From Selaginella moellendorffii (Eukaryota; Plantae; Lycopodiophyta): DNA of 64,000 nt. Made by a program: the position numbers and the translations under genes. Location of the stretch: positions 1,544,293-1,608,292 of the forward strand of contig NW_003314289.1 in NCBI RefSeq assembly GCF_000143415.4, written 5' to 3'. The notes below the pieces were generated by a model. The model ran no database searches and was not told the DNA's origin. It was given only the letters and a program-made list of their open reading frames with translations. Positions 15,952-59,994 of this stretch are shown here, in pieces (the stretch's first letter is position 1; each line of letters begins with the position of its first letter).

Positions 15952-16159
15952 GCTCTGATACCAAATGTAAGTTTTTGAATTTGGACTTTCTAGGAAGTTA
16001 TCCAACCCAATACTATTCAAACCCAAGGACGTTTAACCTCAACTATCCCAAAACCTTTAACCAATTGAAAAAGGGGGTGCACTCTTGTTCATGGGCCCTT
16101 TCCCTTTATATTTAAACCCTATAGATCGTCTTTCAAGTCATTCTCATTAGTTGCTTACA
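15952..16159 (-). mobile_element. Short LTR (15966-16159, TGTAAG...CTTACA) with PBS on the minus strand
   Basis: gctctgatacca at 15952-15963 is the reverse-complement iMet PBS. Fragments of this LTR recur at 3180-3250, 5600-5637 and 5681-5749. Confidence 0.8.
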
Positions 16160-19551: not shown

Positions 19552-19789
19552 TTTTGTATCAGAGGAGTGGTGAATTAGTTGTTTGGCATGGCACTAGTGG
19601 ATCCTTCTTAAGCATGATTATAAATGGATCAATTAAGACTGTAGGAATTAGTTTATTGGTTCAAGTAGTCATTGCCATGCTCTCTCATAAAACTTTTCTT
19701 GGATTGGACTGAAGGCAATGCAAATGCAAGCTTGGTTTAGTCAAAGTTGAGTTCAAAAGAACAATTATTAGGGACGAAGGATCAAACAT

Positions 19790-22095: not shown

Positions 22096-22099
22096 CGAT

Positions 22100-23300
22100 A
22101 TAAGAAAAATTCTTGGTTGTTAGAGGAATTGTAAATGCAAAGACTTTAGTGGCTATTCCAATAGTAGTGAAATTTTCTTAAGAAGTCTTCTACTGTAAAC
22201 AAGAAACCACTAGTTGTCTATTATGGATGACTTTGAAGTTGTTTTCAATTTATATTTTTTCCCTCACTATGACATGGAGAATGCTTGTATGGAATTTTGA
22301 TATTTTCAGTAATAAAAAATAACACTTAGGACTACATTGAAAGCTTATTTTCTTGATTAATTGTATTTCAATTAAAGATTCAAAGAATAAATTATACTTT
22401 ATTGATGGCTTTTAAAGTGAGAGCATGAGGCAATACTTATATCATTTTCCTATGAAGCATTTGGAGGAGTTCTTTGATGTGGGTTGTTGATTTGAAAATG
22501 GTAAGCACAAATCTCATAAATATTTAAGGAGCCTTTCAATAAAGAATTATTATGATAATTGTTATAAACACAAGGATGGAAATAGATATCACAAATTGAA
22601 GCCTATAGTGGTTACTTTAGATACAAAATCATTGAAGAAGTATAAGTTCATTATTAAGAATTATAAGCAAGATTGTCATCATTGTAGTAAATTTAGACAC
22701 TACAAGGTTGATTGTTCACAATTGAAGAACAAGTAACAAAGTAAGAAAAATAATTAATCTTTTAATAATGGTAAAGTTGTAAAATTTGCAGTGTGAGGAT
22801 GATGAGAAGGACTATTCTAGTTTTTAAAAGCGGCTCTCGATTGTTTCTCATTAACTAAAAAGGTAGAGGATGAGGATATTTGTGAATCATTTTTAATGTT
22901 AAAGGGTATATTCTATGGTTTAGTGTAAGTTTTACTAAACAGTAGAAGTAATGATAACTTTGTTTTACAAAGTTTATTGAGGAGTATAACTTTGTGACAT
23001 AAGGAATTCTTCTATACACAATGAAAGGTGCAATTACTTTTACACAATATTCAATGCTTGAGTAAAGAGGGTTAGTTGGCAATATCACACTTGTAGAGAC
23101 TTTTTATCTAATAGAAATCCATTATGTGAAACTTATTTTAAGAATATTATAGTTGATAAAGGTGGATCCAGAGATAAAGTGGACCATTAAATATGTCTTA
23201 CTATAGTTTAGTGGCATTAAGTATATATGGGGAGTTTAACCTCAAGTTATTATGTTCTCTACTACATCTTTGAAGCAGGTTTGTTATTGCGTGAAATGTC
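22100..23300 (+). mobile_element. Highly decayed retroelement gag relic (copia-like)
   Basis: CCHC zinc knuckle CHHCSKFRHYKVDC at 22674-22715. No intact ORF. Confidence 0.5.
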
Positions 23301-23316
23301 TTTTCAAGAGTTTCTC

Positions 23317-23349
23317 AGAGAGGGAGAGGGGGAGAGAGAGAGAGAGAGA
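23317..23349 (+). repeat. (GA)n microsatellite / purine tract
   Basis: Seen directly in the sequence. Confidence 0.9.
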
Positions 23350-25241
23350 TCTTGTCAAGTCATATAAAGTTAGAATTATAAGTCATAATTATGGAATATA
23401 TAATATAGTGATCACTTTCATATAGAGTGACTATACTAATTATTAGTTGTGTTAAATAGGGGTTAAACCACTAAATTTCTACTTAAGAAATAAATATTCT
23501 ATCCATTGAGCTACATATGCATTAACAAATTATGCTAATCCATTCTAATCAATATAGTGTTGAAGAACAACATTTTCATTTATGTTCACTAGCAAAATCA
23601 ATTCTTGGTAAGAAAGTAGCATAACTTGAGGTAAGTCAGAGTTATACTACTCAATTAACCATAAACACTTTGTATTCTCTATCTCTTGTATAGGTAATGA
23701 TGGGAACTTTGGCTTGCAAATTTTTTATTATCAACAAAACTAACAAGATTTTGTTTCTCCTGTTTTCCACAATAAGGTGTGGTTTTGGGGGCAAATTTGC
23801 TGGGATCAAAACCATCCAACCATTTTTGAGGCTTCTGTGAGTTGGGGTTAAAGTCCTATAGAATTACATATGATAATTGAACAAGATATAGAGAGAGTGA
23901 TGAGCTCTTTCTCATAGAAGAGGGCTAGTTATGGAAGAACAAAATTTGTAAATATTGTAATTTCAAGCAGCAAGTTCCTTCTTAACTTACTTTCAAGCTA
24001 CTCAATTGCTTTGTAAATATACCAAGGAAGCAAGAATACAAAGACAACCTCAGTCAACACCTAAGATTTATGGGAACCTAACTGTGATGCAATTCATTTT
24101 AAGGTCACATAAATAGAGAGGTGCATTGTACTTAAGATTTGGAATATGTTAGGATCACTATATTTAAATATTATAGTCACATATAAAACATCTACAAAAT
24201 TATATAATATTCATTATTGACTAGAGGTTTTTACTATATGAAAATATCTTATATTGAGGAGAAAAATAATAATCATTTTTCTGAAGTTTTTTATTTATCT
24301 AAGGATGCAAATATCATGAGTTGGATGACAAATAAAAAATGAAGAAAGATAAATACTCTAAGTATAAAATGTTAAAAACTCTACTTTTATAGGGTTTATT
24401 AAATAGTGTTTGATGCACAAAAATCTTAAATTTAAATATCTGAAACTCAGAAAAATATAAAAATAAATTTGAAATTACTTTATTATTTTTCATACAATGT
24501 TAAATTAAAACAATTTGTTGAATATTTTAAAATAACTGTATTTAAAAATATCAAAAAATTATTTTTTAATTTTAGTTTTAATCTGTTACGGAGAAATAAG
24601 TTATTAAGTCATGAATATAATAATTTAAGTAAGTATAGTTTTATTTTTATTTCTAACCTTTTCTAATAAAAACTTATGCAAGACTACTTAGGTGTGTAAA
24701 TGTTATTATGGAATCATCCATTGTTTGACTTCTATATACATGTGGCTTTTCCAACCGGCAAAATGTGAATTTTAGTGGCAGTCATATTTTTAGTGAGAGA
24801 TAGAGTTTTCTGATAGAATTTTCGGCATTTTGATTGCATGCAAGGTTGTGAGTTTCCCTTACAACAGCACCATTCACCACTTCTCACTGCCAAGAGCATA
24901 GAGTATCAGGCTTTGCAATTCAAGTGTTGGCTGTTTAATTTGTAGCTGGGTAGGGCTCCATTCTTGCTGAGCTCACGGTTATGGGGTTGGGGCGAGTGCT
25001 CTCCCTGTCCTTAATGCCATGCAATTTTCCACCACTTATCAACGCTAGAAAAAGTTTTTACAAACTCCCAGCTGAAAAAACACAGGAATCCACCAGTTTT
25101 GGCAAGAGCTCTTTGATGAGAGTTGTGCCCAAACTGCCATCCTTGCACACCAAAGTGATGTTATTGTCACAGGAACCTAAAAAGAAGATTTAATTGCCAT
25201 TGCCAGGGATCATAAACCCGAGACCCGTGTTGTTTGTTACT

Positions 25242-25314
25242 CGCGCCAGACAGGGGTCGAACCTGTGACTTTCTGCTTAGGAAACAGACGCTCTATCCAC
25301 TGAGCTACAGGCGC
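25242..25314 (-). tRNA. tRNA-Arg(CCT)
   Basis: 73-nt cloverleaf, anticodon loop ttCCTaa, A and B boxes. Identical to 38218-38290. Confidence 0.97.
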
Positions 25315-25487
25315 ATTGACAAAGTTGTGAGGGGCTGGTAAACTCTAAGTCCACTATAGTCAATGTAGTGTTGAATGGCAACATTCTCATTTTAGTGTTA
25401 ACGTGTCCAGCGAGAACTTCGCAAATCAATTATTCCTGGCAAGAAAACAACTTAATTTTGGACCTTTCTCCTCAAGCCAAAATAAAT

Positions 25488-25858
25488 ATGAATTCCATAT
25501 CGATGGCTCTCTTATTACAGTGTTGGGGGCTACTACAACTCTCATCGTTTGGGGCATTTTCTTCCATGGATTTGTGAGTGGCGGCTCCTTCGGTGTTTTC
25601 CTCGACCCGGGATGCAACATCTCGGGGCCTCGGTTCGATCAAAAGGAGTGTGGCGAGTGTCACTCGTATCCAAGCTTGTTTGGCTACAGGTTTGATTGGG
25701 ATGGCAAGCACGCCTTGCTCTTGTGGCCTGCTCCCACTTGCAACGCCTCTGACAAGCTCCACAAGACACGGTGGCCCCCCTCCTCTTGGTCGCCCTCTAT
25801 ACCTATCGTACAAAATCTTGTAGAGCAAGCACGTAATTATAGGGCTAAAGCTGTGTAG
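25488..25858 (+). pseudogene. MiAMP1-like antimicrobial peptide gene with an apparent frameshift in the signal peptide
   Basis: SFGVFLDPGCN..RF..KECGEC...FGYRFDWDG..ALLL...TCN resembles MiAMP1 (FTVWSGPGCN..RYSKCGC...GGYDFSYTGQTAALY...GC). The ATGs at 25488 and 25503 are out of frame with the hydrophobic stretch. Confidence 0.55.
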
Positions 25859-26042
25859 TTAAAGCAAAATATAAAATATGAGAAATAAAACTACTTTATA
25901 AAATAGAATTTAAAAGGTTAAGGATTTAAAATATGTAATAATACATCATGTTTATTTCATGTCAATATTTTAATTACCAACCTTTGAAAAGTGGGGAAGC
26001 TAACAACAAATGTGTGTGAAGTGGAAGATGCCTCCCATTTGT

Positions 26043-38037: not shown

Positions 38038-38217
38038 CTACTACAATTCTCATCGTTATGGTTATGGAATTTATATGTTGGCTGGAGGAGGAAGGTCCAA
38101 ATTTAGCTTTGTTGTTTTGAATCGTCCAGGAATTGATTCGCTAGGAGAGGTTCCAGTCAACAGTACATTGACTAGAGTGGACTAAGAGTTGACCGGGCCA
38201 GTACGACTTCGTGAAAT

Positions 38218-38290
38218 GCGCCTGTAGCTCAGTGGATAGAGCGTCTGTTTCCTAAGCAGAAAGTCACAGGTTCGACCCCTGTCTGGCGCG
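38218..38290 (+). tRNA. tRNA-Arg(CCT)
   Basis: 73-nt cloverleaf with CCT anticodon. Confidence 0.97.
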
Positions 38291-38556
38291 AGTAACAGAC
38301 AACTCCTTATGGTTCACAGCAATCTAAATTTCTCTGTTTCGTTACAAAATGAAAAAGAAGATATAGATATATGCCAAAGACCATGTGTTTGTTTTTGTTT
38401 TCTTTCATTTATAAGAAAGAAAGAAGAGTTAATAGTTACACATTATGCCATACCGGATTTCTGGACATGGTAGTAGAGCAGGTAAGTAACTAGACCCAGC
38501 ATCCACTCCGTAGATATTTACAAAAATTGCTTTGTTTCTGTTACATTTCTAGGAGA

Positions 38557-41242
38557 TTATATCACAGTTCCATCCTTTACTATCGAGTTCTTCACGACAA
38601 CAGTGATTCCAGAACGTATGTAGATTCCTTCGGATGGTCTCTCAGCCTCTTGCACACCCTGGTTGACCCACAGTGGTTGATGAGAGCTCATGAAAAAGGA
38701 ATCGAGAAAAACAAACTTACATCTGTGTTTGTGATAATGACATGGCTGCCGATCCTTGCGTTCTTATCAACCAAGCAGTTCCTGAGATCGAGAAAAAGGC
38801 ATTATTTAGCTTCAGTGACTATAATAACTTGTCATCCATGATTTACCTCATTGTTGTGTGCTCGCCCACACCAAGTGGAACTTTGCCCTGTGCTCTCAGT
38901 GCAGCAATCTCGGCCTCAGTTTCATAGGAATCAGCTCCCATTATGATGGTATCCTGTTTCAAAAAATTTAAGCAGTTCTACCTTTACCACTGTCTTGGGT
39001 ATGATGGAAAGGACAAACCTTAAGCTCTACACCAGACTCTAGCCTGGAACGGACGCCAATGAGTGAATGCTCCACACTGCAGGACTTTAGAAAGCAGCCG
39101 TGCGATACGATAGAATCTATAATCTGCACCGGCGACAAATCATGGTCAAGAATTTTTCTTCATGAGGCAGCCCGACTCTTACCCTGCATTTCTCCATCTT
39201 TGTTGGAGGCAAAAACCGCGGAGATGTGAAAATGGGATTGGAAGCATCGTAAAAGCTGAACTTTGGTGGCTGCAAAGAGATTTTTTTTTTGTATGAGTAA
39301 GTGTTTAACTGCGAAGTTCCAACTCCAAAGGCATTACCTGAGCAGTGAGAGCGAGATTAGCGTCAAAAAACGACTTAATAGTTCCAATGTCTTCCCAGTA
39401 GTCATTGAAGAGATACGCCTGCAATATCAAGTTTTAGGCGTAGAATGCAAGACAAAGCACACAAACTTCCCACCTGAACATTGTACTCGCTCGCTGCAGC
39501 GGGAATGATCTCCGAGCCAAAGTCATTAGAGGTAGGATACCGCCATCTAACAATGATTTAACAAACCGGAAAAAAATAGGTAAAATAAACCAATAAATTT
39601 GGAAGACTGATATCACCTGAGGAGTTTGAGGAGTACGTCTTTGCGAAACACGTAAATTCCCATGGATGCAATGTATGGCATCTTTTTCGCCTCCTCCCGT
39701 GAAAGACCCAACGCAGTTGTGTCAACTTGCTGTTGAACACGAAAAGAAAAAAAGTAAAAAGCACTTTCATGAGAAAGTGAAACAACTGAACCTCTTTCTG
39801 AAAAGCTTACCATTGCTTTCAGATCCATGCCTTTGGGCTTCTCGCTAAACGAGATGATCCGGCCCCTCGCGTCAGTCTTAACGAGCCCGAAATCCGATGC
39901 CCGGCTAAACAAAAAAATGAAAAAAAGAAAACAAGAAACGAATCGTCAAGTGCTCAGCAGAATGCCAGAAACAATTGAATAAAGTACGACAAAGATACTG
40001 TGAGAAACGACACCAAGTGTTCGCCGGAGCGGGCCACAGCTGTCCCCGCTAGCATTTTAACCTCTAGTGGTTCACTTGCATGGGAATTCTAAAAGGTGCT
40101 CACCTCTCGTCCACAGGAACACATGAGATGGTGATGTCTGCACCAGAGTCCTTGTGCTTCTGCGGGAGCAACGCCAGCCACCATACGACTGACATAAGTC
40201 ACACGCCACACAAACTGCGCGCAAGAAAACATACCTGGACAAAGTCCATGTAGTCCATGCGGTAGAGGTGATCACCGGAGAGAACAAGCACGTAGTCGAC
40301 GTCCTTGTTTCTCACATCCTTGTCATACAAAACGAAACCTCAGCATACGAGCCCAACACCTTGGAAATGGTAAAGAGTACCTCGAAAAGCCAAGTGAACT
40401 GCCTTACGGCGTCTGCGGTCCCTTGAAACCAATTCATACCAGACTCCCCTGGGGTTTGCGTTGCTGCCAGTACCTACATCAATCACACGCACAAAGATCT
40501 GAGACCAAACACTCCGTATAACAGATATTTCTAGCTCTTTCATTTCCTCCACCTCAACAAAGCCATCCCCAGCATTGATGAAGTTGTAGGTGCGAGCGAG
40601 GTGGCGGTTGAGCGACGCCGAGTTGAACTGCGTGAGTACGAAAACTCGGTTGATCCCGCTGTTGATGCAGTTGCTCATTGGAACATCGATCAAGCGGTAG
40701 CCACCGCCAATTGGCACCTTGAGGAACAAAGTGTGTGACGAGGAGTTAATACACACACGAGAAAGGAGAGGAAGAAAAGGTGTAGCTCTCGATCATACCG
40801 CAGGCTTTGCCCTTTGCTTTGTGAGGGGAAACAATCGCGTTCCAACGCCGCCTCCCAGGATGATGGAGACGACCGACTTGGGATCCACGCGCGGGGTCTC
40901 AAACACCGAGAATGGTAGCTCGACTTGCTGGAAATCAATCAAACAAGAGGAATCGATGCTTCCATAGGAGAAGAGGCTATACAAACTCACCTTTGCTTCG
41001 CGCGGGGGATAATCCACTAGAACAGCGGACGACAGAGCGGCATTCCCTCCTTTCTGGGCCGCCTGGCATTTGGCGATCCTCGGCTTGGATTTCTCGGGGA
41101 TCTTCTTGAGATGGAGAGCTGCCCCGAATAAATCGCGCTTGGCGAGCGACGAGCTGGCTGATTTGCAGGCATGCAGGTAGTCTTTCCTGCCCCCCGCACT
41201 GACCGATCCCATTGGACTGGAAGAAATCGCGGCGTTGGCCAT
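38557..41242 (-). CDS. APL: ADP-glucose pyrophosphorylase large subunit, plastid-targeted, multi-exon
   Basis: [61 protein letters not shown]-terminal KDGTVI. Confidence 0.95.
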
Positions 41243-43187: not shown

Positions 43188-45894
43188 ATGGTCCACTTTG
43201 GACATTATATCTTGGCGAACAGAATTCCAGAATGGGAAAGGTAAGATCACAGGAATGTCGAGGGAATGTCAACTCTAAAAATTTATGATCTTCTTGATGT
43301 TCCAGTCACTACATTGGCTACAAGGCTCTGAAGAAGAGGATAAACGAGTATGCATCTCGCGCGTCTCATGCTTCCTCGGAGGAAAGAGAGCAAATAATAA
43401 GCTCTTTTGCGCAACTTCTCGACTCACAGGTACCAAGTTGAGCTAGTTCTTTGCAAAGCTTGTGATTTTGGCACTCCTGTTTGGAAAGGTGGAGCGAATT
43501 GTGCTGTTTCTCATGGAGAAGCAAGGACTTCTCGCAGAAAAGCTGCTGAAGCTGGCCGAGAAGCAGGAAAAATCCCTTGCCGCCATGGAAATTGACGTGG
43601 AGGCTGCGACAAGCTATCACCTAATTGAGGAATACAGGCAAGAACATCTGTCACTTGAATTCACTGTGTAAACTCCGTGTAAACAACGCAGAGCTATTGG
43701 ACAAGAGCTTCTCAAGCTTTTGAACTTTGTGGAGATGAACACCACTGGCCTCAGGAAGATACTTAAAAAATTTGACAAGCGCGTTGGCTTTCGTTTCAGA
43801 GAACAATATCTGGCTTCCCGAATAAACCACCCTTATTCTCAACTACAACAAGTCTTCAAACAAGTGGTAAGTGTTCTACATTTTCTTCTGTTTCGTTGTT
43901 TTTCCTTCTCTCTCTGGTATTTATTCTTTACAAGCTTGCAGGGTATTGGAGCTCTAATGGGAACTATAGCTCAAAATCTTGCTCAGCTGAGCTCCGGGCA
44001 CAGTCACAGACAGAGTTACTTCTCTCTCTTTAGAAAGTCATCTCTTCCTATCGAGCATGAGCCTATAATCAAGGTCTGTATTGTCTCATCCCAAAACATG
44101 GAAATATAACACTACGTATTGAACAGGCTCTCGAAGGAGCACTACACAGGCTTACAAAAGAAGTGACTTTTATGTCCTTCGTTGCAAACGACCTGCTCTT
44201 ACCTGAACCGTCTGACCATGCTTTAGAAACTGCCGATGAGCGAGAGTTCCATTTTATGTCCGTCCAGCTCAACCTATGGAATACTTTCCTCTACATGGTA
44301 CTGAGATTGCCACATCCATGCTCTAAAAGTTCTAATCGTGGATCTTGTACCAGGCAAACTACTACATTGTAGTTCCCACTTCAGATGATTATGCCGAAAC
44401 TTTACACGTTCCTGGAACCATGAACGGGGTGATTATTGGAGCCATGCCACTGGCAGCACTTGTGTCTGCACTGGTTTATAGCTGGTGGTCGAACTTCTCT
44501 TACAGAGCTCCACTGTTTATAAGTACGCTGCTCTTGATGGCGGGCAATCTCATGTACGCGCTGGCGTTGCCCTTCCACTCGTTCTGGTTTTTGGTCATAG
44601 GACGTGCCTTGAGCGGGTAAACTTGCTTGCGACATTTTAATGTTTTCATATTTTTTTACGTGCTCGAGCCTTGTGTAACAGGCTGGGAGGTGCAAGGGCG
44701 ATCAACCGGCGATATCTTATGGATCATGTTCCTGTTAAGCACCTTACAAACGTATCAGCGTCGTTTGTTATCGCTAGCTCGCTAGGAATGGCGGCTGGCC
44801 CTGCACTTGCAAGCCTCCTCATCAAGCTAGACTTCCAGGTAAGCTGAAAGCATATCGATAGTTTATGAATGACTTCAACCTTTGAAACAGATGCTAGGCT
44901 TTCCAGTGAACCAATTCACAGCTCCTGGATGGGTGATGTTACTTCTTTGGGGAATATATCTGATTGTTTCACTCTTTGCATTCAAAGAACCAAAGCGGCT
45001 GAGCGTCAACCATGACACAGAAAACCAGGTTCACAGTGCTTTTGTAGATGATGGTTCGGATTCTGGCTCTGGTATCACTGACCCTTTATTGGGAGAAGAA
45101 ACGGTTCCGGCCAAAGGCAGGAAACCTGCTGGAACTATTTCAGAACTCTTCAGGGCGATAAATACACCAGTGCAGATCTTGCTCTTGGTGTATTTTATGC
45201 TCAAGTTTGCCGTGGAAATGTTGGTATCCGAATCTGGGATTATCTCCGAGTTTTACTTCCAGTGGAGCTCTTCACAGGTATGCAAACATTTGCAGATTTT
45301 TTAATATGCACATATATTTTGATCAGGTGGGATACTTCTTAGGAGCACTTGGATTGGCTGTGCTTCCAATTTGTGCAGTGGTTGCTAACTATATCAGCAA
45401 CACATTCGCGGATAGGTAGTAACACCTCTTTTTTTTTCTCACTTTTCTACGTTTTTTTCTTGTAGGGTCGTAATTTTTTGGACAGAGATTCTAATTGCAT
45501 TAGGAGTCATTGCAAACATCTGCTATTATCCATTATTCAGATATACCACAGTGCAATATGTTGCTTCGGCTATTGTAATTTTCCTTTCAACAAATGTGCT
45601 TGAAGGTTAGTCTTGGATTTCCTGGAGCTTTTATCTCACTTGGAAAAAGTTTCAGGGGTTAACATGTCACTTCTTTCCAAAGTAATGCCGTCGCGTCTAT
45701 CTAGAGGAGTTTTCAATTGTGGATTTCTTTCCACTGAAGCTGGGACACTAGCTAGAGCATTATCTGATGGATTAATATCTTTGGCTGGTAAAGCAGGAAT
45801 GGAGTACCTTCTTATTGTTACTATGATTCCAACTCTAGTGCTTGTCTTGGCAACAATTGCCTGCACCTGGATTGGGTATTATACACTCTATTAA
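43188..45894 (+). CDS. SPX-MFS vacuolar phosphate transporter (PHT5/VPT family), multi-exon
   Basis: SPX motifs [14 protein letters not shown] and [15 protein letters not shown]; MFS motifs [15 protein letters not shown] and [15 protein letters not shown]. Confidence 0.95.
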
Positions 45895-46249
45895 CCCATA
45901 AATATTTGCACTCTATTTTGAGTTTAAGAAATTGCATTTTGCTGTATAAAATACTGTATTAAACAATTTGAGCAATTAGGCCTTTAATTTGTATTTCTAG
46001 TTATAACATATGCTCTATGTTCAGATTTTCAGGTTTGCCTCGGTCACCTATACAAGGATTAAAATCTGCATAAATATATTTGTGGAAATTTTCTTCGGGC
46101 AATTTTCCCCAGTCTTGCATATATTTCATGTTTTTCTATTGCTAACTAAATATATAGCTTTTTTCGTCGGCAATGTATTTTACAAAACTATGAATTCATT
46201 TGTAACTAATAAATACTTTTTTCAGCTTTTTCCCTTAATATTTTATCTT

Positions 46250-47430
46250 GAGCGTTCTATCAGCAAACATATTGCTAATACCATCTCCATACCTGCGAGT
46301 CTCAAAGGCTCTAATCAGGTCAAAACTTCGCAGATGCTGTGTGGGCGAGAGGCTGGGATCTGGCTGCTAAGTCCAAGTCGCTTATGAGGTATGCTGGGAA
46401 ATTGGTCATGCCCAAGCTCCCTTTGACAAGGATTTTGTAGCGAGGAGGTGATCAAGACGCTGGTGGAGACACTGAAGAGGGATGTCGTCTCGATCTCACG
46501 CCGAGACCATCTTTGAAAAACTTGGCCATAGACTTGTGGGGACTGGGGACCGTAAGAAAAAAGGAACATCACATGAACAGCAGTTTGGAACTTTCAGGTC
46601 GCTTGTTTGTCCTTCCTTTCTCATCTGGACTTTGAAAAACTTTTGGTGTCCCAGAAAATGACATGGATATAAAAGCATTCAAATATGAAACTTGTGCCCA
46701 CACATTGGGCAGTCTAGTCTTCATCTCAACGTCACCTTTGAGGAGACAAGTTTTCTGCTTCCAAAGGCAACATCCCTTTAAGCTATTAAAAATGTCATTT
46801 AAATAAGTGCTGAAAATTACCAGTTAATATGAGATCGCAATCACTCATTGTTTACAATTGCGACCGACGAATTATAGCACCCAATCTCTCACGTGGAGGC
46901 CACATGTGCTCCTTGGCCTTATGTGCACAAGATAACCCACGAGACACACGCCTTTTCATTTGTGTAGACATTGCAATATGTAAAATAAAAGTAATTTGTC
47001 TTAAAATTAATCAGAAATATACTTTATATAGGCCTTTGGTGTTGCAATCTCTCGTCATATCTCCTTGGACTTTAGTCTTATTGTTGAGCATCCAGGGAGT
47101 ATAAATTGCCAAACCCCACAAAGCCCGAGAGGTTGTTGCAAAGAGCTGCTCGCTCATGTCCAAAACGTCCACCGGGCCAAGGCTCGCTTGCAAGTCTGCA
47201 AGAGAGGCACCAATGTCTTGTATCAGCATGTTGACACCTTCCACTAGTACCGGCTCGAGCTTCGATCGAAAAGCCACCACGTCATGCAGGAGGTCATGGC
47301 GCAGGATGTCCCTCTCCGCCTTACCAGAGTTCTCTGTTCCATTCCAGAAACATTAGGGCAGGGTGCCATTCCTCCCGCTCCTTTTCAAGGTGGAATCCAA
47401 AGTTTCCCCCGGTCTGTCCCGTTATGGTAA
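46250..47430 (-). pseudogene. Degenerate coding-like fragments of unknown family
   Basis: Protein-like ORF 47011-47280 extends upstream (CFWNGTENSGKAERDILRH) through a stop. A frameshifted GC-richer block lies at 46250-46560. Confidence 0.3.
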
Positions 47431-47722
47431 ATTAGAATGCTCATGCTCAATTATCTCAAGGAGCTCCTAAAGTTTTCTTCATGCTCCAGGTATTGCTGCC
47501 ATTGGGATGAGGAATGTAACCGCTTGAGTGAGCGTGACAACTATCAGTTCTCTGATCTTTCAATTTTGAAGTTCGTTAATATTGCAAGAATCATGAAAAT
47601 CTGGTAAGTTTTTCTTTAAAATGAGAGCTTGTGAGATTCGTTTTTCTGGTTCTTGGATGCAAGGTGCTTGAGGGCGAGCAGGAGTTCATGTTGCTACTTT
47701 TGCAAAAACAAAAGATGCCGAA

Positions 47723-47793
47723 TGCACTGCCCGGGAATCGAACCCGGGTCTGTACCGTGGCAGGGTACTATTCTACCACTAGACCAGCAGTGC
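47723..47793 (-). tRNA. tRNA-Gly(GCC)
   Basis: 71-nt cloverleaf, GCC anticodon, downstream T-runs. Confidence 0.97.
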
Positions 47794-47948
47794 TTAATTG
47801 ATATTAACACTAAATTGTTTCCGAGCCTTGAGGGATATTATTTCCATCGTTGGTCGAGCCAAAGGCAAGGGGGCGGAGCACGCTCGGAAGCAGTCCTCCA
47901 GGTCAGTGAGATCGCTTGCGCATCGCATCGAGCTCATTCCCCATCGCA

Positions 47949-49390
47949 ATGAGCGAGCGCATTGTGAGATCTTTGATGCAGGCCGTGGTGACCGTTGACC
48001 TTGGCAAGCTCGTCGAGACGCTGCTGGATCTCGCTTACAGCGCCCAGCATTGCAGGGAAAAATCCAAGACGCTGGCACTCAAGGTGGAGCTCCTCAGCGA
48101 GTCCATTGCGGAGCTCATCGAGAAGAGGGAGCACTTTACTCGAGAAAACTTTGGAACACACGTTAGAAGGCTCGAGGTAAGATCCTGTTGTTCTTCCAAG
48201 ATTTAAATGTTTTCTCTTCCCAGGTGGTGTTTAACGATGCTATCTATCTTCTCCGGAAGTATAGAAACGGTAGCATCTTCGTCAAGATCTTCAAGGCACC
48301 ACACTCCGAGGATGGATTCGACTCTATCAATCAGAGACTGGAGATTTGCATCCAGTACTTTGGATTCAGCCTGCAAGTCAGGAACGAATCCAAAGTCTCG
48401 AATCTCGCGGAAGAGAATCGGCAGCTGCGCTCCATGATCCAGTCCATTATCCAGCAGCAGCAGGTTGATATGAGAAGATTGCTCAGTGGGGAGCTAATGT
48501 CCGAGGAGAGAGATGCGGTGAACGCGATGCTGGAAGGACTAACTTTCGACGACGATGACGAGGTTTATGACGAACACACGCTGTGTGCCACTCTCGAACA
48601 GCCTGGTTCTTCTTCCGCAACGCGAGTTCTACTCTTATACTCGGAGGATCTTGGAGAGAAAGAGCTGGCCATTCTCAAGCGGCTCTCAGAGTCTCACGTC
48701 AACATTCTCCAGTTCTTTGGGACTTATGTGGATGGCAAAACGAAGTATGCTGTCATGGAGAGGCCGGGGAAAGAAATCTCGACGCTAGACGAGTTTATAC
48801 ACAACAAGCCAGAGCTCAAGGATGGCCACTGGAGTCTCAAGAAGAACTTTGCTCTGGAGATCGCCATGGGGCTGCAATACGCTCACGCTGTGGGTGTCGT
48901 CCACAAGAACCTCCGGAGTCCAAACATCTTCATCGACGATAGCCAGGATCTCCGTCCCAAAATATTTGGATTCAACCAAGGAAGGATTGAAGCGTTGAAA
49001 AGTGACAAGCGGCCGCAGAGCAAGGAGCAGGTCCGGTGGAAGGCTCCCGAGATGTTGCCGCAGGCAAACCGAGCGATCAGGCGCCCCGAGTATAGTTACG
49101 CGTGTGACATCTTCTCGCTGGGAGTCGTCATGTGGGAGATCGTCACTTGGTCGTTTCCATTTGAGCAGATCAAAGGGGTGCGAGGCGTGCTCGAGGCAAG
49201 GGCAAGGAGGGGAATGACGCTCGATTTCTCGGCTCTTCCGCCGGGGGATCGCTCCCCAGCGCTCCAGTCCTTCGTCCAGATTAGCATGGATTGCATGGAA
49301 GAAGATAGCGGCAAGAGGCCCAACGTTGACGAAGTCGTGGAGAGGCTGTCACAGCTTGTTCCAGAGGACATGACGTTTTCTTCTTTGTAA
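47949..49390 (+). CDS. MLKL-like protein: N-terminal four-helix-bundle-like domain plus pseudokinase (464 aa; intron 48177-48223)
   Basis: The helical N-terminus (CREKSKTLALKVELL...LLRKY..GSIFVKIFKA...FDSINQRLEICIQYFGFSLQV) fits the MLKL N-terminal pattern. Kinase motifs HKNLRSPNI, KIFGFN, WKAPE and DIFSLGVVMWE. Confidence 0.8.
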
Positions 49391-49799
49391 TCAATCGGCA
49401 CGTAAAATATAAAATATAAAAATAAAATGGAGAAATGTGCTAAATTATTGTAGCATCGAAGATGGGGCCAACCATTTTTTGTCTTTAAAGAAGTCAGAAA
49501 TCCTGTTTGATGATTTCGAGCATATAGGAGGCTAGTTGGAATAGCCAGAAAATCATAGCAGCAAGAAGGAGCTTGCGACCTTCTTGGGCAAGTTGGGCAG
49601 AATCTTTCAAGGCAATTGTGAACAGCTCTGACTAATTGTCAATGGTGTGGACCCCTTTCGAATGGCCAAAACAACTTTAATTTATTGCATTGTAATCCGA
49701 ATTGAAGTTTTCTTGTGAAAAAATCAACTGTGAAAACGTGCTTTCTAGAAACGGGGACTTCTTCTTAAGTAGAAAGAATTGTGGATCTTAAGTTTTGAG

Positions 49800-50909
49800 A
49801 TGTCGAACGGCAAGAAGTCTATTTTGCAGCCTTCAACTAGTGGTAGTATGAGCCAGCCACCATTTTCTGTTCAAGCCTTTCATGCAAACAATTGGTCAAG
49901 ATTGCCAAGTTATGACACACATGCCCAAAACTTGAGATCACGGAGGACAAGTGGTGATAACAGAAGTTTGAGTTTGCAGCCTTCAATTAGTGTTTACAGC
50001 AGACGAAGCAGTGCTTCCAGTGGCAACCAGTTCTATACTAAAAGTGATGGGTGGGCTGGATCATGGTTAAATTCGTCCAGATCTTCAAGCTTTTCAACTA
50101 CCAGCAGCACTAAAAGTGGATCTTCTGGAATCAGCCAAATTTCCGTCCAGGCTGTTGCTTCTACCGGACCAGTTCTGGAAAGGAGTGGTCACATCTTACC
50201 AAGATGCGGATTTAGCTCAAGGCCTCCATCTTCTGTTTCCGTCCAGGCTGTTTCTTCTGTTCCGGAAAGGAGTGGTCACGATCTTGTACCAAGATGCGGA
50301 TTTAGCTCAAGGCCTCCATCTTCTGTTCAAGCTTTCAAAGATGGTCACAACAACTGGTGGAGCCTAACCAGTGATGGATCTTCAGCTTCCAGCTTGCAGT
50401 CGGCTCAGAAGTCCTCAGCACCTGACTCAGCTTCAAGAATTAAATCTGCAGCGTCTGTCCAGAACTCGGGCAGAGCATTTAGACGTGATTTGGATCAGCT
50501 CACACACACAAGCAGCACCAAGTCTCAATTTAGCTCAAGGCCTCCATCTTCTGTTCAGGCTTTTAAAGATGGTCGCAACAACTGGTGGAGCCTAACCAGT
50601 GATGGATCTTCAGCTTCCAGCTTGCGGTCGGTTCAGAAGTCCTCAGCACCTGACTCAGCTTCAAGAATTAAATCTGCAGCGTCTGTCCAGAACTCGGGCA
50701 GATCATTTAGACGTGATTTGGATCAGCCCACATACACGAGCAGCACCCAGTCTCAGTTTAGCTCAAGGCCTCCATCTTCTGTTCAGGCATTCGAGAGTGG
50801 TCGCAATAACTGGCCCAGTTCATCGGCTTCAAGTATTAGACCTGTCCAGAACTCACATGGTTCGGGTATGAGAAGGTGGAGAAGGTTTTTTGTGTCCTGT
50901 TATTGTTAA
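49800..50909 (+). CDS. Orphan Ser-rich protein with internal tandem repeats
   Basis: Open frame of about 370 codons. The 90-bp and 228-bp repeat spacings preserve the frame. Confidence 0.55.
   Translation: MSNGKKSILQPSTSGSMSQPPFSVQAFHANNWSRLPSYDTHAQNLRSRRTSGDNRSLSLQPSISVYSRRSSASSGNQFYTKSDGWAGSWLNSSRSSSFSTTSSTKSGSSGISQISVQAVASTGPVLERSGHILPRCGFSSRPPSSVSVQAVSSVPERSGHDLVPRCGFSSRPPSSVQAFKDGHNNWWSLTSDGSSASSLQSAQKSSAPDSASRIKSAASVQNSGRAFRRDLDQLTHTSSTKSQFSSRPPSSVQAFKDGRNNWWSLTSDGSSASSLRSVQKSSAPDSASRIKSAASVQNSGRSFRRDLDQPTYTSSTQSQFSSRPPSSVQAFESGRNNWPSSSASSIRPVQNSHGSGMRRWRRFFVSCYC
50140..50815 (+). repeat. Tandem duplications with 90-bp and 228-bp periods
   Basis: tttagctcaaggcctccatcttctgtt at 50211, 50301, 50529 and 50757. 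Confidence 0.95.
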
Positions 50910-50946
50910 AAAACTTAAACAAGACTATCAAAGTCCATTGTAAATA

Positions 50947-51252
50947 TTATTTCTGCAAGATTTTTACCCCATTTGTGCAGCTCTCCAAAGCAACAAGACA
51001 ATGCTGCCACGCATCAACTGATGGATAGTTCATGTCGAGCAGAAACTGGACCAGAGAATGGAGCTCATCACAAGAATCGCCATTTTCGTATCTCTCCACA
51101 AGCTCACACCTTGTTTCAAGCGCTGCCACTGCTGCAATCCTCTCATCTTCTGCCTTGAGATGGCCCGTTGCTGCTAACGAAACTCCACAGTGAATTTGAG
51201 CAGACACAAGAAGCACTGTTAGTAGCAGCAACAAGAGCGCCTTGCTCCCCAT
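50947..51252 (-). CDS. Small putative secreted Cys-containing protein (101 aa)
   Basis: Signal-peptide-like start MGSKALLLLLLTVLLVSAQ, four Cys in the mature helical part. Confidence 0.5.
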   Translation of the reverse strand: MGSKALLLLLLTVLLVSAQIHCGVSLAATGHLKAEDERIAAVAALETRCELVERYENGDSCDELHSLVQFLLDMNYPSVDAWQHCLVALESCTNGVKILQK

Positions 51253-51383
51253 AAAGGAAGAATGAAGAAATAGAACTCCTAACAGCTTTTTGGCTTTTTT
51301 CCTGGGCAGAAGTGCACATTTCAACCAACATTTAAGTCACCACTAAAGTTCAAGTTGTGTTTGTAAATTCAATTAGCTCAGGT

Positions 51384-53603
51384 TTACAGAGTATACATGT
51401 TAGAGAGAAGAACATACGTAGCTGAAAATCTGGACAAGTTCCGATCGAGGATAGCCTCATTTGCAGCACATCTGGCACTAGTAACTTTCACATCTGGTTG
51501 TCTTCCACACGAACCCAGGAATGCCGCCACCGCCACCTTGCCCGGATCGTAAGGCATGCTATCAAACAGGTCCTTGGCCTCGTTCACAAGTCCAGCTCTA
51601 CCAAGAACATCAATCATACAACAGATGTGCTCTTCCTTGGAAACCACAAAGTAATCAAACTCCATCGAGCCAAAGCATTGACAAGCCTCTTTCAAATGAC
51701 CTGAGTGGCTCAATGCCGTAAGAATGCTCATAAACGTTACTTCGTCCCGACTAACACCCTCTAAATTGAGAATGTAGAGGAGAGTCTTGGGGCTCTGTGG
51801 ATGCCGCGAATGGGCATATGCTGCCACCATGGCTGTCCAGGACAGTGTGTCTCTCGCGGGCATCTGGCTAAAAAGGTGCCACGCCTGAAACACGTCACCG
51901 TGGTGAGCATACGTGGCAAGCATGGCATTCCACGTCACCCCGTCCCGCTCCGGAATCCAGTCAAAGCTGGCCCTGGCCTCGTCAACGCAATGACTCTGAC
52001 CGTACGCCGCGATCAGCGCATTCCACGTCACCACGCTACGGTACGGCATCGAGTCAAACAGCTTCCTGGCCTCGTCAACCAGGCGAGCCTCGCCGTACGC
52101 ACCAACCATCACGTTCCACGTCACCACACTCCTCAGCGGCATTGTATCAAACATGACACGCGCCTCCTCCAAATGCCCGCCCCGGGAATATGCCGAAACC
52201 ATGCTGGTCCAAGATACCAGGTCGTGCAGTGGCATCCGATCAAATACCTTCTTTGCTTCATGGAGATTCCCAGCCTGGGCATATGCTGTGAGCAGAATCG
52301 TCCACGAGACCAAGTCCGCTTGTGGCATCTTTGTAAGTGTGCTATCCAAAGATTCTAAATTCTGGGCATGGGCATATGCTCTAAGCATCGCATTCCAAGA
52401 GACTACGTTCCTCTCAGGCATTGCATCAAAGATTCCCTTCGCCTCTCCCAAATGCCCGTCCTGGGAATATCCCTGAAGCAGCGAAGTCCACGACACAATG
52501 CTTTTGACCAGCGCAGAGTCAAAGAGATTCTTAGCATCCTTTAGATGCCCATTTTGGGCATATGCCTGTATCATAGTGCTCCAAGTTACCACATTCCTCT
52601 CAGGCATGGAATCAAACACCCTCTTCGATTCTAGCAAATGACCCTTCTCGGCATAAGCTTTCACCATCATCGTCCACGAGACAATCGTCCTCTGTGGCAT
52701 CCCATCAAACGTTTCTTTCGCATCTTTCATATGCCCAACGAGGGCATACGTCTGTGCCATGACCGTCCAAGTCATTACGTTTGGCTCCGGCATCTCTTTC
52801 AAGAGCTCGAGAGCTTTCCTGGGCTCCCCATTTTGCCTATACATAGTCACCACCGTGTTCCACGACACAACGTTTAGCCTCGGCATTCGCAAGAACAGCT
52901 TCTCGGCCTCTTCGACATCGCCCTCTTGCGCATAGGCCCCGATCATCGCGTTCCAGGAAGCTATGCTTCGATCCTCCATCTTGTCAAACAATCTCCTGGC
53001 TTCCTGGAGCTGCCCGTTCTGAGCATACCCAGTGATCAAAGTGTTCCACGAGACTGCGTCCCTGTCTCGCATTCCATCGAAAAGCTCCCTGGCTTCTCGT
53101 GTCCGACCGTCTTGAACGTACGCTGCGATGAGCGTGTTGCACGAGACGATGTTCTTCTCCGGCATTCTCTGGAACACCAACCTTGCCTCGTTGGTATGCC
53201 CGCTCTGGGCATACGCCGAGACGATGATGCTCCACGAGTAGACATTCGGTTGGGCGATGCCGTCAAACACCGCCCTCGCTTCCTGCAAGCTCCCAAGTTT
53301 GCCATACATCTCCACCAAAAGGTTCAAGAGGTACCTGTCCTGCAAATGGTGCTCGCTCTTCCGGATCCGACCGTGTAGCTCTCGGCCCTGGAGGAGATTG
53401 TCACACGACTTGACGAGTGTTGCGAGCTGGAAGGCTCCCTCGGCTCCGCTGCGCTGGTCTAAAACTTCTCTGGCCAGCCGACCCCATTTGAGACCAGGAA
53501 CCGAGCTTGCGAGACTTGTCAAGTAGTGATCCGGGAGTGTTCCCAGCGCCAGACCTTGGTGAGGACCAAATGGTATCCTGAGATCACTGGCACTCAGCGC
53601 CAT
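51384..53603 (-). CDS. PLS/SS-rich PPR protein with truncated E region, no DYW, and an extra N-terminal domain
   Basis: Long run of 31-aa repeats (FD.MPER.VVSW), HICCMIDVLGRAG, ends TYVLLSNMYTL. Confidence 0.93.
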   Translation of the reverse strand: MALSASDLRIPFGPHQGLALGTLPDHYLTSLASSVPGLKWGRLAREVLDQRSGAEGAFQLATLVKSCDNLLQGRELHGRIRKSEHHLQDRYLLNLLVEMYGKLGSLQEARAVFDGIAQPNVYSWSIIVSAYAQSGHTNEARLVFQRMPEKNIVSCNTLIAAYVQDGRTREARELFDGMRDRDAVSWNTLITGYAQNGQLQEARRLFDKMEDRSIASWNAMIGAYAQEGDVEEAEKLFLRMPRLNVVSWNTVVTMYRQNGEPRKALELLKEMPEPNVMTWTVMAQTYALVGHMKDAKETFDGMPQRTIVSWTMMVKAYAEKGHLLESKRVFDSMPERNVVTWSTMIQAYAQNGHLKDAKNLFDSALVKSIVSWTSLLQGYSQDGHLGEAKGIFDAMPERNVVSWNAMLRAYAHAQNLESLDSTLTKMPQADLVSWTILLTAYAQAGNLHEAKKVFDRMPLHDLVSWTSMVSAYSRGGHLEEARVMFDTMPLRSVVTWNVMVGAYGEARLVDEARKLFDSMPYRSVVTWNALIAAYGQSHCVDEARASFDWIPERDGVTWNAMLATYAHHGDVFQAWHLFSQMPARDTLSWTAMVAAYAHSRHPQSPKTLLYILNLEGVSRDEVTFMSILTALSHSGHLKEACQCFGSMEFDYFVVSKEEHICCMIDVLGRAGLVNEAKDLFDSMPYDPGKVAVAAFLGSCGRQPDVKVTSARCAANEAILDRNLSRFSATYVLLSNMYTL

Positions 53604-53718
53604 GCATGGTCTCTGAAGATCACTGAAAACTACGTTGATCTCTAGCCTGGAACTTGGAACCAAAAAAACGTTTCACGATTTATTAACATACCACTTTACG
53701 CACAAAGCTCTCGTCGTC

Positions 53719-54561: not shown

Positions 54562-55644
54562 GTCCAAGGCCTGGAAAAAATCACAAACAAAACTCTCAGC
54601 AAAGCATGGACGATCGAGCTCTCTTATCAATTTCGCATTTGGATCGCCATTCCTATATAGATCTAACTTCTAACTGAGATCGATCATCGCTTACCAAGAG
54701 ATCCAAGGCCTAGAAAATCACAAAAAAAATAAAATAATGGCTCTCTATCAATTCCGCAACGATCGCTTTTGATCGCGATTCCTACATAGATGTAGATATT
54801 CTAGCTGAGATCGATCATCGCTTACCCGGAAGTAAGAGATCCACGCGCCGCGATCCAAAAACCCTAGCCAAATGTAGGCAACGCGCTTCCTTCCGCGTGG
54901 AGATTCCATCGCATCTTTGTGGATACGTGGCAGCCAGCTGTGGACTATGGTTTGACTAGGGTAACCGTATTTGACTATCATTGACCGGAGGGGTGATTCT
55001 TTCGCCATCAAATAACAATAAAGACACACACGCTCCCATTTTATGGCCTTTGACACCGATGTTCCGTCACCTTGTCATCTTTTAGGGCAGTGCATGCATG
55101 GCACGCACTGCCATTGTCGTTTTGCCCTTAACTTTCTCTTCTATCACCCTGCATGGATGGCGAGAGAAAGAGAGAGCAATCAGACCAGCGAGGAGAAGGA
55201 GGCTTCTTTTTAAATGCACACCGGAGACAGCAACTGCAAAGAAGATAAAGGACTAAGAAGTCTCGATCGATCATCAAGCTGAAGCAAGGATTCTCATTTT
55301 TGTTTCCTGGCTCTCCATGTTGTTCTCGCTCAAGAGCTCTGTTTGTTGGGCATTTTGAGAGTGACAAGGCCATGGCATTTTAAAGGCGTGACCCACACCT
55401 TTGTCCTTCGGTCTAGCTCTTTGTCCTCTGAAAACTCGAGGAAAAGATTTGGTCGGTACGTTGCTCCTCTCGGACGATCTAAGCATCATAAGATACAAAT
55501 CGTAGGACTTTGTGTCTTCTTTTCTGGGCTGGCTGTGGTGGCTGCAATGGTGAGCCACAAGTGCCTTTATCTCGTTTCTTCGACTGATGAACTCGACCTT
55601 ATATCTTTGTTTCGCGTGTGTGCCAGGACCCAGAAACTCCCGGG

Positions 55645-56972
55645 ATGACCAACGAGGGATTCTCCTCGCAAGGCTGCGATGATTTCCTGGAGCTCCTGCC
55701 GATTCTGCTCAACACCCACAACCAAAAGGACGTGATGCACAGCATGGGGATGCTGTCCGCGGCGGCATCGTGCTCTCCCCAGGATCACCACGGCAATGCG
55801 GCTAGAAACGCTGCAGCACTCGCGGTGGCTACTCCGGACCATCAATCCGGCGATAGAAAAGAGCATGGCTCTTTGGACACTGTTGTTCATCCCGGGGACG
55901 AGCTCTATGGCAACCCAGTGTACAGTAGCGCGAGTTGTAACAGCTCCAAGACTCCAAAGGCTGGGAGACTTAAGGCAATGGTTCCTCCGGCCTTGGGCGG
56001 AGTTCTCTCCGCCCAAGAGGACCTCGGACCCAAGAGTGGCGATGGCAAGAAAGCCACCGTGAAGCGCGATGTTTGCGGCGACGAGGTGAAGAAGCAGCAG
56101 CAGCAAGGTCAAGCGAGCAAAGTTTGCTCCAAGGCCGCCGGGAGCGCGTCCAAGAACCTGGTGTCAGAGAGGAAACGACGCAAGAAGCTCAACGAGAGGC
56201 TCTACTCACTGCGAGCAATCGTCCCCAAGATTAGCAAGGTTTATCATTCTCTCTTCTTGCTCCCCTAGAACACCTCTCGAGCCAGAGCTAGAACTTTCAC
56301 TCTCTTGCAACGTAGAAACCTTTCAAGATGAAACCTTTGATTGGATTGGATTGCATCGCAGATGGACAAGGCGTCAATCGTGGCCGACGCTATTGATTAC
56401 GTGCAAGAGCTGCAGGGAAAGGTGCAAGAGCTTCAGGAGGATGTGTCGAGCCTCGAGGCGGCGGAGAGGCGAGAAGTGGAGCTCGGGAGCGTCGTCGACG
56501 CCTGGAACGAGATGATCGTCAGTGACCACCGGGGTTGCAGCTATTCCACCGACATCGACCAGCACTACGCCAAGTTGCGCAACCAAGACTCCCGCAAAGC
56601 AGTCGAGGTAGTTCTCTTTCTTTCGTATCCATTTACAAGTTTGTTCTTCTCCAGCTCGAAGTTTCCAAGCTCGAGGAGCAAGTGTTCTACTTGAGAATCA
56701 ACTGTGGGAACTCGGACGGAGTTCTCATCCAGCTCGCGAAGGCCTTTGAATCCATCGGGCTGGAGTTTAGCAGCGCAAGTCTCTCGTCCTTCCAAGGCAA
56801 GATCATCAACAGCTTCATCGCGAAAGTAAGCTCCTTTCCATCTTATAGTTCCAAGATCTCCTCATGGAAACGAGAAAACTTTGTCCAGATGGAAGAATGG
56901 AAGTCCTTGCACACCGACGAAGTAAAGAAGATCCTCCTTGAGCTCGCCTCCAAGTATGGAATCTATGGCTAA
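55645..56972 (+). CDS. bHLH transcription factor, subgroup IIIa-like (bHLH27/35/FIT), with a C-terminal ACT-like domain
   Basis: SKNLVSERKRRKKLNERLYSLRAIVPKISK|MDKASIVADAIDYVQELQ and LEVSKLEEQVFYLRINC. Confidence 0.9.
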
Positions 56973-57092
56973 ACAAGATATGGCCGTTGTGCACGACCAA
57001 TGGCTAGACAATCTGGTAATTTTTACTCTGTAAAAAGGTATATCGCATCGTACAAAATAAAGTTGTGACTAGCAACGGTTAAAATGCACACA

Positions 57093-57164
57093 AGCCCCTA
57101 GCGAGGATCGAACTCGCGACCTTTCGCTTACGAAGCGAACGCACTACCACTATGCTATAGAGGC
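57093..57164 (-). tRNA. tRNA-Thr(CGT)
   Basis: 72-nt cloverleaf, anticodon loop ttCGTaa. Confidence 0.95.
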
Positions 57165-57197
57165 CATCCTTGCTAGGAACCCCTCCGTGGCCGGAAA

Positions 57198-59086: not shown

Positions 59087-59416
59087 GCGATGCGATCGCG
59101 GCAGCTAGATCCAGAGGATGCTGCCCCGGCCGATCGATTCGATGGATCGCGAAATTTCTACTTACAAGAGAGCGCTGCCAGAGAGGATCTTCTCCTAGGG
59201 CAAAGAACTCCGTGGCACACAGAAATACGACACATAGCGCTCCCATTGACACGCTACACCCTTGAGTGACGGCTGGGATACCTTTGAAAAGACGTTGCGT
59301 GGGCATCTTACCGTTGGATTATGTGTTCCAGATGCCCGGGAAAAGAAATTCTTTTTCTAATTTTATTATTGCTTGAGAAGCTTAGGAAGTTTTGCCTGGA
59401 AAAGGGTTACATCACT

Positions 59417-59489
59417 TCCGTTGTAGTCTAGTCGGTTAGGATACTCGGCTCTCACCCGAGCGACCCGGGTTCAAGTCCCGGCAACGGAA
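59417..59489 (+). tRNA. tRNA-Glu(CTC)
   Basis: 73-nt cloverleaf, CTC anticodon, T-run terminator. Confidence 0.97.
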
Positions 59490-59994
59490 TGTATCCTTTT
59501 CAGGGCCTTTTTTCATTGAGAGCTTTTTATGGCCGTCCAGCTGGACGGCTGGATTCAGCCACATTTGAAATTTTCCTAATGCACGGAATATGCCGGAATA
59601 GTCTTATGGCCATGGGCTGATCGCCATGTATGCCCATGAAACACACACCACTAGGTTATTTTCTCTCGCCGGAGCCCCTGTTCTTCGTAGTCCCTGCTTC
59701 TCTCCCCGCTCTCCGTGTCTAGGGCGCCGATCTGATGCCGCGGCGGCGCTCCCGGTGATCTCCGTTTCAATTTGAGCACTCTTTCTCTCACATTTGCTCG
59801 CCGCGCCGCGATTTTCCTTGCTTCCGGGATGCAGATCGGGCGGCGCAGCTTGTGCTTGACCGCTGGGTGCCGAAAAACGCAAGATTTGGGGTTGGAATCT
59901 TGGTAGGAGGCATTGCCGATCCAGGGTTTGCTGCCGCGAGCCAACAGGGTTTCCAGGGAAGGAAGCTTTTCTCCGCGGGCGAGGTATTCTGGAG

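Follow-up and report, generated by a model that had tools for sequence, protein, structure and literature searches.

The protein described here is encoded by a two-exon gene at positions 47949-49390 of a 64,000-nucleotide stretch of the Selaginella moellendorffii genome (contig NW_003314289.1, positions 1,544,293 to 1,608,292 of the forward strand; this whole stretch is referred to as the window, and all positions are given in its coordinates unless stated otherwise). We propose that this is an expressed MLKL-type pseudokinase from a family of non-seed land plants that is sister to an orthogroup of proteins from Glomeromycotina, the arbuscular mycorrhizal fungi, and that it would act as a regulated, membrane-permeabilizing executioner, a reading to which we assign a probability of roughly 0.6. 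An initial annotation, made from the sequence alone, had described the product as an MLKL-like four-helix bundle joined to a pseudokinase with animal-style motif degeneration, in a probable lycophyte and possibly of a lineage distinct from the MLKLs of seed plants. Most of that description stands, with two qualifications concerning lineage and kinship that are given below together with the trees.

The gene lies on the plus strand and encodes a 464-residue product. Exon 1 (47949..48176) supplies the first 76 codons, for residues 1-76, and covers helices 1 and 2 of the bundle along with the beginning of helix 3; exon 2 (48224..49390) encodes residues 77-464 followed by a TAA stop codon (49388-49390), and the two are separated by a 47-nucleotide intron (48177..48223) with GT..AG boundaries in phase 0. 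Logan contigs from four runs of four studies were placed on positions 46500-51500, and in each of the four runs one contig omits exactly the 47 intron nucleotides. The contigs begin at 47873 (runs X1 and X10) or at 47764, within repeated tRNA-Gly sequence (X2 and X4), are continuous from their starts to the intron, and have 3' ends at 49300-49732, with zero contig coverage of the intergenic interval 46834-47668 in the four runs. The RNA nature of these runs is only a tool's guess, and we take them as RNA because of the spliced form and the gene-shaped coverage. The gene is expressed, and the initial annotation thus has transcript support. Unbroken contigs leading into exon 1 give a 5' untranslated region (UTR) of at least 47873..47948, and the longest contig sets the extent of the 3' UTR (49391..49732), the remaining contigs stopping at 49394-49400. 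Because the stretch 47764-47948 is free of ATG codons and has an in-frame TGA at 47907, the start codon is at 47949, the first ATG of the transcript.

Over residues 11-464 the product matches residues 161-614 of S. moellendorffii XP_024536224.1 (614 residues, named 'GCN2-like') without a single difference, which settles the source as the lycophyte that the initial annotation had thought probable. The same residues are approximately 98% identical to XP_024534395.1 (513 residues, named 'TMKL1'), whose gene sits on a second, roughly 2-Mb scaffold and probably represents the other haplotype. Just upstream of the start codon is a tRNA-Gly(GCC) gene (47723-47793, minus strand), and the N-terminal extensions of the two NCBI models (513 and 614 residues) are translations of its antisense strand, with the affected region being 47653-47980. 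These models bypass the real ATG by means of an upstream intron that is contradicted by all of the contigs, which are unbroken from 47873 to 48176. We also note that the orthologues described below begin about 20 residues ahead of a conserved D-[IL]-G-K-[LV]-V motif, as does the 464-residue model. The contigs, the tRNA antisense, and the orthologue starts therefore make the 464-residue model better than either NCBI model, and the names TMKL1-like and GCN2-like are misleading.

With fungi living inside plant roots as the nearest non-plant relatives of this protein, the question arises as to whether the gene is an artefact, be it fungal contamination, a pseudogene, or a chance open reading frame (ORF). 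This explanation is effectively refuted. The window holds plant genes (for a PPR protein, an SPX-MFS-like transporter, and tRNAs), the gene occurs in two copies, 98% identical, on separate scaffolds of some 2 Mb each that are probably the two haplotypes, and the 47-nucleotide intron is spliced out in the RNA-type contigs. Moreover, the ORF is intact, and its orthologues in six other plant genera are 33-39% identical to the Selaginella protein and form a clade with 100/100 support.

The N-terminal 121 residues (47949..48358, a span that includes the intron) correspond to the MLKL_N four-helix bundle by Pfam, structural modeling, and fold matches. Pfam MLKL_N (PF22215) matches the near-full-length protein at 45.1 bits, relative to a cut-off of 27, while Pfam HeLo (PF14479) gives no match, and Pfam RPW8 (PF05659) is not significant for this protein, reaching E 0.033 in one orthologue only. 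When a profile of the N-terminal 190 residues of four sequences was searched against all PDB sequences, only chains of the MLKL four-helix bundle were significant (human, 1.1e-6; mouse, 2.5e-4), and there was no other match under E 0.1. A full-length profile of 12 sequences, searched against 177,635 PDB sequences, places mouse MLKL (4BTF) first at 8.8e-32 in one stretch over profile positions 28-441, a colinear alignment that passes through the brace region; MLKL 6LK5 is second (4e-29), and both outrank all kinases in the PDB, including BRAF, RAF1, and ZAK. Within helix 1, a basic motif H-C-R-E-K-S-K (residues 34-40; 48048..48068) aligns with K-Y-C-K-K-Q-C-R-R of human MLKL.

Structural modeling leads to a similar picture. 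The full-length AlphaFold2 model (39-sequence alignment; predicted local distance difference test [pLDDT] 80, predicted template-modeling score 0.82) has four long helices and one short one over residues ~12-121, two predicted brace helices over residues ~134-175 (48395..48520), and a complete bilobal kinase fold, in agreement with the helical N-terminal domain, linker, and kinase fold of the initial annotation. The brace helices span residues ~134-163 and 166-175, or 124-153 and 156-165 in the numbering of the model, which is the residue number minus 10. Foldseek returns full-length mouse MLKL (4BTF) as the top PDB match of the full-length model (474 columns, E 3e-12), and for a separate model of the N-terminal part (pLDDT 83) it returns the human MLKL executioner domain first, with a template-modeling (TM) score of 0.66, and the NRG1.1 CC-R domain next. 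Exhaustive comparison of the N-terminal model with VIA-align gives Z scores of 12.8 for 4BTF, 12.6 for 6UX8, 10.1 for NRG1.1, and 9.6 for Arabidopsis MLKL3 (AtMLKL3; 6KA4) at 10% identity, and because unrelated helical bundles reach similar values (up to about 13), these matches count only beside the sequence evidence, which is strong. An ESM-Atlas shape search with the N-terminal model was uninformative, the top match being a plant DUF7032-Arm cluster and the remainder bacterial sensors.

The pseudokinase domain (residues ~178-455; 48527..49360) is TKL/RAF-like, with matches to Pfam Pkinase and PK_Tyr_Ser-Thr from profile position 47-50 onward only, and the best structural superpositions of its kinase lobe are with TKL kinases of the RAF family (BRAF, Z 28, with a root-mean-square deviation of 2.2-2.5 Å over ~250 residues). 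Each of the motif losses reported in the initial annotation is confirmed from the sequence. The Gly-rich loop is absent, the beta3 strand reads RVLLLY (48623..48640) and lacks the VAIK Lys, HRD is replaced by HKN (residues 303-305; 48902..48910) with loss of the catalytic Asp, and DFG is replaced by GFN (residues 325-327; 48968..48976) with loss of the metal-binding Asp; the APE motif is retained. Without the beta3 Lys, ATP binding is predicted to be poor or absent. The activation loop carries a K-S-D-K-R motif (48998..49012), where the family as a whole has the consensus P-S-[DE]-K-[KR]-W with an invariant Ser and Lys; given this conservation, we regard the motif as a candidate site of regulatory phosphorylation. 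Directly after the kinase domain the protein terminates with V-P-E-D-M-T-F-S-S-L, without a Ser-rich extension, and the tail motif V-P-E-D-M (49358..49372) has as its counterpart R-P-E-E-L in the Glomeromycotina sister group. Judging from these comparisons of sequence and predicted fold, we consider the protein to be a genuine MLKL type in the broad sense, composed of four-helix bundle, brace, and pseudokinase, as the initial annotation had claimed.

An exhaustive HMMER search of 1.84 billion cluster representatives with the N-terminal profile yielded 105 proteins at E<=1e-3, of which seven are at E<=1e-30, with names taken from cluster look-ups (about 30 hits) and from word-based searches. 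Members of the family are found in Selaginella (two loci), Diphasiastrum complanatum, Sphagnum species, Ceratodon purpureus, the liverwort Riccia sorocarpa, and the fern Pteridium aquilinum, and several metagenome proteins fall with the mosses. Their lengths are 443-465 residues with the exception of the Riccia protein, which at 611 residues is probably mis-modelled. No seed plant appears among the strong hits, the roughly 30 name-checked hits, or the word-based searches, and no algal member turned up in the profile search and look-ups. In every member the beta3 Lys and the Asp residues of HRD and DFG are absent, and the APE motif, the activation-loop Ser-x-Lys, and a C-terminal P-E-[ED]-M tail are retained; because the residue losses are common to all members, the pseudokinase state is ancestral to the plant family. 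The family is thus small and low-copy, is present across mosses, a liverwort, lycophytes, and a fern, and is not lycophyte-specific. No description of this family came up in our literature searches. A supplementary table of NLRtracker results does record (MLKL)(PKin) proteins for Sphagnum, Azolla, and Salvinia, which are not discussed there, and it has zero such proteins in Selaginella and Diphasiastrum (PMC11218826).

Two members merit separate mention. The Selaginella paralogue SELMODRAFT_428198 (positions 8001-9338 of locus L002, S. moellendorffii GL377664.1) is 445 residues long and is part of this plant clade. In place of the basic helix-1 motif it has a degenerate A-R-N-S-I-G-R-C, its MLKL_N score of 17 bits is sub-threshold, and upstream of it there is only a 105-residue kinase fragment on the opposite strand. 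The orthologue P0004 (positions 6001-7356 of locus L001, a 1.26-Mb ENA metagenome contig) is intronless, groups with mosses in the trees, and is a probable moss orthologue; a gene for a 921-residue ankyrin-repeat protein kinase lies on the opposite strand at a distance of about 2.5 kb.

Phylogenetic placement was addressed with maximum-likelihood trees of the bundle plus kinase (LG+C20+F+G4; no seed-plant MLKL sequences included). The plant clade and an orthogroup of Glomeromycotina proteins (from Geosiphon, Ambispora, Rhizophagus, Acaulospora, Racocetra, Gigaspora, Diversispora, Dentiscutata, and Paraglomus) each have support of 100/100, and the two are sisters with support of 99/96. A further branch (99/97) sets the plants, this sister, and other Glomeromycotina paralogues apart from the MLKLs of animals (fish and brittle-star). 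The approximately unbiased (AU) test rejects a clade of plant proteins plus animal MLKLs (p 0.0009), and marginally rejects a single fungal clade (p 0.0225), a group that was defined after the tree had been seen. In the ranking by the N-terminal profile, the plant family comes first, then Glomeromycotina, then fish, shark, and brittle-star MLKLs. With a plant-plus-animal clade rejected and the motifs shared with the fungi, we conclude that HKN and GFN arose in parallel to the animal losses and not through shared ancestry. The 'animal-style' degeneration of the initial annotation is therefore correct as to the motifs themselves and incorrect as to animal kinship, the losses being shared with the Glomeromycotina sister. 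Similarly, the distinct lineage that it proposed holds insofar as the protein is not an ordinary seed-plant MLKL, but the lineage is broader than the lycophytes. Among the other MLKL_N proteins recovered from metagenome and Logan data, a sizeable group (P0034, P0035, P0053, P0096, and P0080) has apparently active motifs (VAIK, HRDLKS, and DFG) and falls on the animal-MLKL side of the tree; Sel1 and TPR repeats are present as well in at least P0035.

The sister relationship raises the possibility of gene exchange between plants and fungi. Among early-diverging fungi, Sel1-bearing MLKL homologues are reported to be exclusive to Glomeromycotina (PMC8778642), and this restriction, together with the lack of algal hits, makes ancient plant-fungus transfer a live hypothesis. 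Transfer is also suggested because the plant clade is sister to just one of several Glomeromycotina paralogue groups, because our searches recovered the family, among plants, only from non-seed land plants, and because the one-fungal-clade constraint is marginally rejected. A tentative scenario, possible but in our estimation doubtful, is that horizontal transfer took place between stem arbuscular mycorrhizal fungi and stem land plants, most likely from fungus to plant, and that bryophytes, lycophytes, and ferns then retained the gene, as an executioner of cell death or ion flux, for >400 million years, while seed plants lost or replaced it.

What might the Selaginella protein do? For animal MLKL the roles of the four-helix bundle, the brace, and the pseudokinase switch are established, and the K-Y-C-K-K-Q-C-R-R region of the human protein contributes to phosphoinositide binding. 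By homology, the pseudokinase and brace of the plant protein would hold the bundle inactive, and phosphorylation of the activation-loop Ser (residue 336) by a kinase would probably be the release signal. The freed bundle could then oligomerize, use its basic helix 1 to bind acidic lipids of the membrane, and permeabilize that membrane or conduct cations, leading to immune signaling or cell death.

Several observations weigh against this proposal. First, confidence in the brace is modest (pLDDT 50-70), and the Z scores of the bundle are within the range noted above for unrelated helical bundles. Second, the bundle (residues 1-121) is not net basic, having 18 Lys and Arg and 17 Asp and Glu residues. 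Third, the trees are unrooted, have some long branches, and lack the seed-plant MLKLs. Finally, plants are not known to have RIPK3 or RHIM partners, and the neighboring ORFs within the window include no adjacent partner kinase.

The near balance of charges also bears on a different reading, in which the protein is a non-lytic scaffold or decoy pseudokinase, such as a guarded bait for effectors of pathogens or a regulator of trafficking or the cytoskeleton, with the bundle serving for protein contacts. Contigs in four studies indicate common transcription of the gene, which suits a killer protein only if it is tightly auto-inhibited, although animal MLKL is likewise constitutively expressed while auto-inhibited. 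For the Arabidopsis MLKLs, immunity is separable from cell death, and the proteins associate with microtubules (bioRxiv 10.1101/681015). Nonetheless, conservation of the basic helix-1 motif that aligns with human MLKL, and of the full MLKL architecture across anciently diverged land-plant lineages, argues against a scaffold or decoy, and we regard it as unlikely. The executioner reading remains the one that we favor.

The neighbors of the MLKL-like gene look like housekeeping genes, and there is no NLR or immune-type cluster around it in the window. Downstream are a 759-residue PPR protein (51384-53663, minus strand) and an ORF weakly matching bHLH (55618-56268, plus strand), and upstream are an SPX-domain/MFS-like transporter (43720-45900, plus strand) and an ADP-glucose pyrophosphorylase-like gene (40340-41242, minus strand), the latter two being assigned by eye from their ORF translations and without a search. 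Directly downstream of the MLKL-like gene is a 376-residue Ser-rich ORF (49779-50909, plus strand), which has no Pfam match and is covered by low-depth contigs; a 228-bp tandem repeat (50300-50813; 2.3 copies, 94% matches) underlies its sequence. Because the MLKL-like transcript ends by 49732, this ORF is separate from it, and it is a curious neighbor given the Ser-rich tail of seed-plant MLKLs. Four more tRNA genes are present, at 25241-25315 (minus strand), 38217-38291 (plus strand), 57092-57165 (minus strand), and 59416-59490 (plus strand); their types are tRNA-Arg(CCT), which occurs twice in opposite orientations, tRNA-Thr(CGT), and tRNA-Glu(CTC). The stretch 8001-26000 is AT-rich (GC content 0.30-0.39, versus 0.42-0.56 elsewhere), in places has a strongly positive GC skew and a negative AT skew, and may be repeat or transposon-derived DNA.

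MLKL-type executioners have been studied so far in vertebrates and, in very divergent form, in seed plants. The present gene represents a new, mis-annotated MLKL subfamily, and it was unexpected that the sister group should come from mycorrhizal fungi. Through it, non-seed land plants are seen to carry an expressed, 'classical' MLKL that is tied to animal MLKL by plain sequence search, and whose pseudokinase form is conserved in lineages from mosses to ferns. The compact, single-intron Selaginella gene, along with the intronless probable moss orthologue, offers a case in which to ask whether a pseudokinase-gated bundle switch works outside of animals, and the sister relationship with Glomeromycotina makes ancient gene exchange with the oldest fungal symbionts of plants testable.

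Of the known systems, the seed-plant MLKLs (AtMLKL1-3; 6KA4) likewise consist of a HeLo-type bundle, a brace, and a pseudokinase. They have been described 'across seed plants' only, were linked to animal MLKL only by comparison of hidden Markov models (HMM-HMM), and in Arabidopsis have a HeLo domain with cell-death activity; AtMLKL3 itself is 701 residues long, its brace has five helices, and its C-terminal region is rich in Ser (Mahdi et al., bioRxiv 10.1101/681015). A simple account would be that the Selaginella family consists of non-seed-plant orthologues of these proteins that are related by vertical descent, the seed-plant forms having diverged fast and gained the Ser-rich tail. Both are plant four-helix bundle-brace-pseudokinases whose bundles superpose (Z 9.6), and their distributions are complementary, one having been found in non-seed plants only and the other described in seed plants only. 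However, similarity of the bundle sequences is essentially undetectable. A broad MLKL_N profile of 44 sequences gives AtMLKL3 an E value of 0.53, which is worse than the values for the CC-R domains of ADR1 and NRG1 (3e-5 to 1e-3) and contrasts with 1e-28 for animal MLKL; 6KA4 is undetected at E<=10 by the family N-terminal profile and does not reach the first 60 PDB hits obtained with the full-length profile. Identity to AtMLKL3 is 10%, compared with 16-18% to animal MLKL, there is no Ser-rich extension in the Selaginella protein, and the link between seed-plant and animal MLKLs itself needed the HMM-HMM comparison. We therefore consider vertical orthology to be quite improbable, and as far as PDB sequence and fold scores show, the Selaginella protein does not appear to be an ordinary seed-plant MLKL.

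The RPW8-like CC-R domains of the helper NLRs ADR1 and NRG1 (7L7V, 8ZW9, and 9JBN) have the same bundle fold (Foldseek TM 0.66; VIA-align Z 10.1), and their profile similarity to MLKL_N is weak but real; they differ in that the bundle is joined to NB-ARC-LRR rather than to a pseudokinase. The Glomeromycotina orthogroup (Geosiphon KAG9295780.1, and proteins of Rhizophagus, Gigaspora, and Paraglomus) has an MLKL_N-pseudokinase-Sel1 architecture, and shares with the plant family a C-x3-C pattern in helix 1, H-K-[NY] at the HRD position, a DFG motif without its Asp, an E-Q-x-R-W-x-A-P-E motif, and a P-E-[ED]-[LM] tail. The fungal proteins, at ~700 residues, have Sel1 repeats at the C-terminus and retain the beta3 Lys, whereas the plant proteins end after the kinase domain, with no Sel1 repeats found by Pfam in the Selaginella protein or its plant orthologues. 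Animal MLKL (mouse 4BTF; human four-helix bundles 6UX8, 6ZVO, and 2MSV) differs in its identity of only 16-19% and in keeping the beta3 Lys that the plant family is without. Nevertheless, it has bundle, brace, and pseudokinase in the same order and at nearly equal length, a basic, Cys-containing helix-1 motif that aligns with that of the Selaginella protein, and a pseudokinase from which the HRD Asp and DFG Asp have also been lost.

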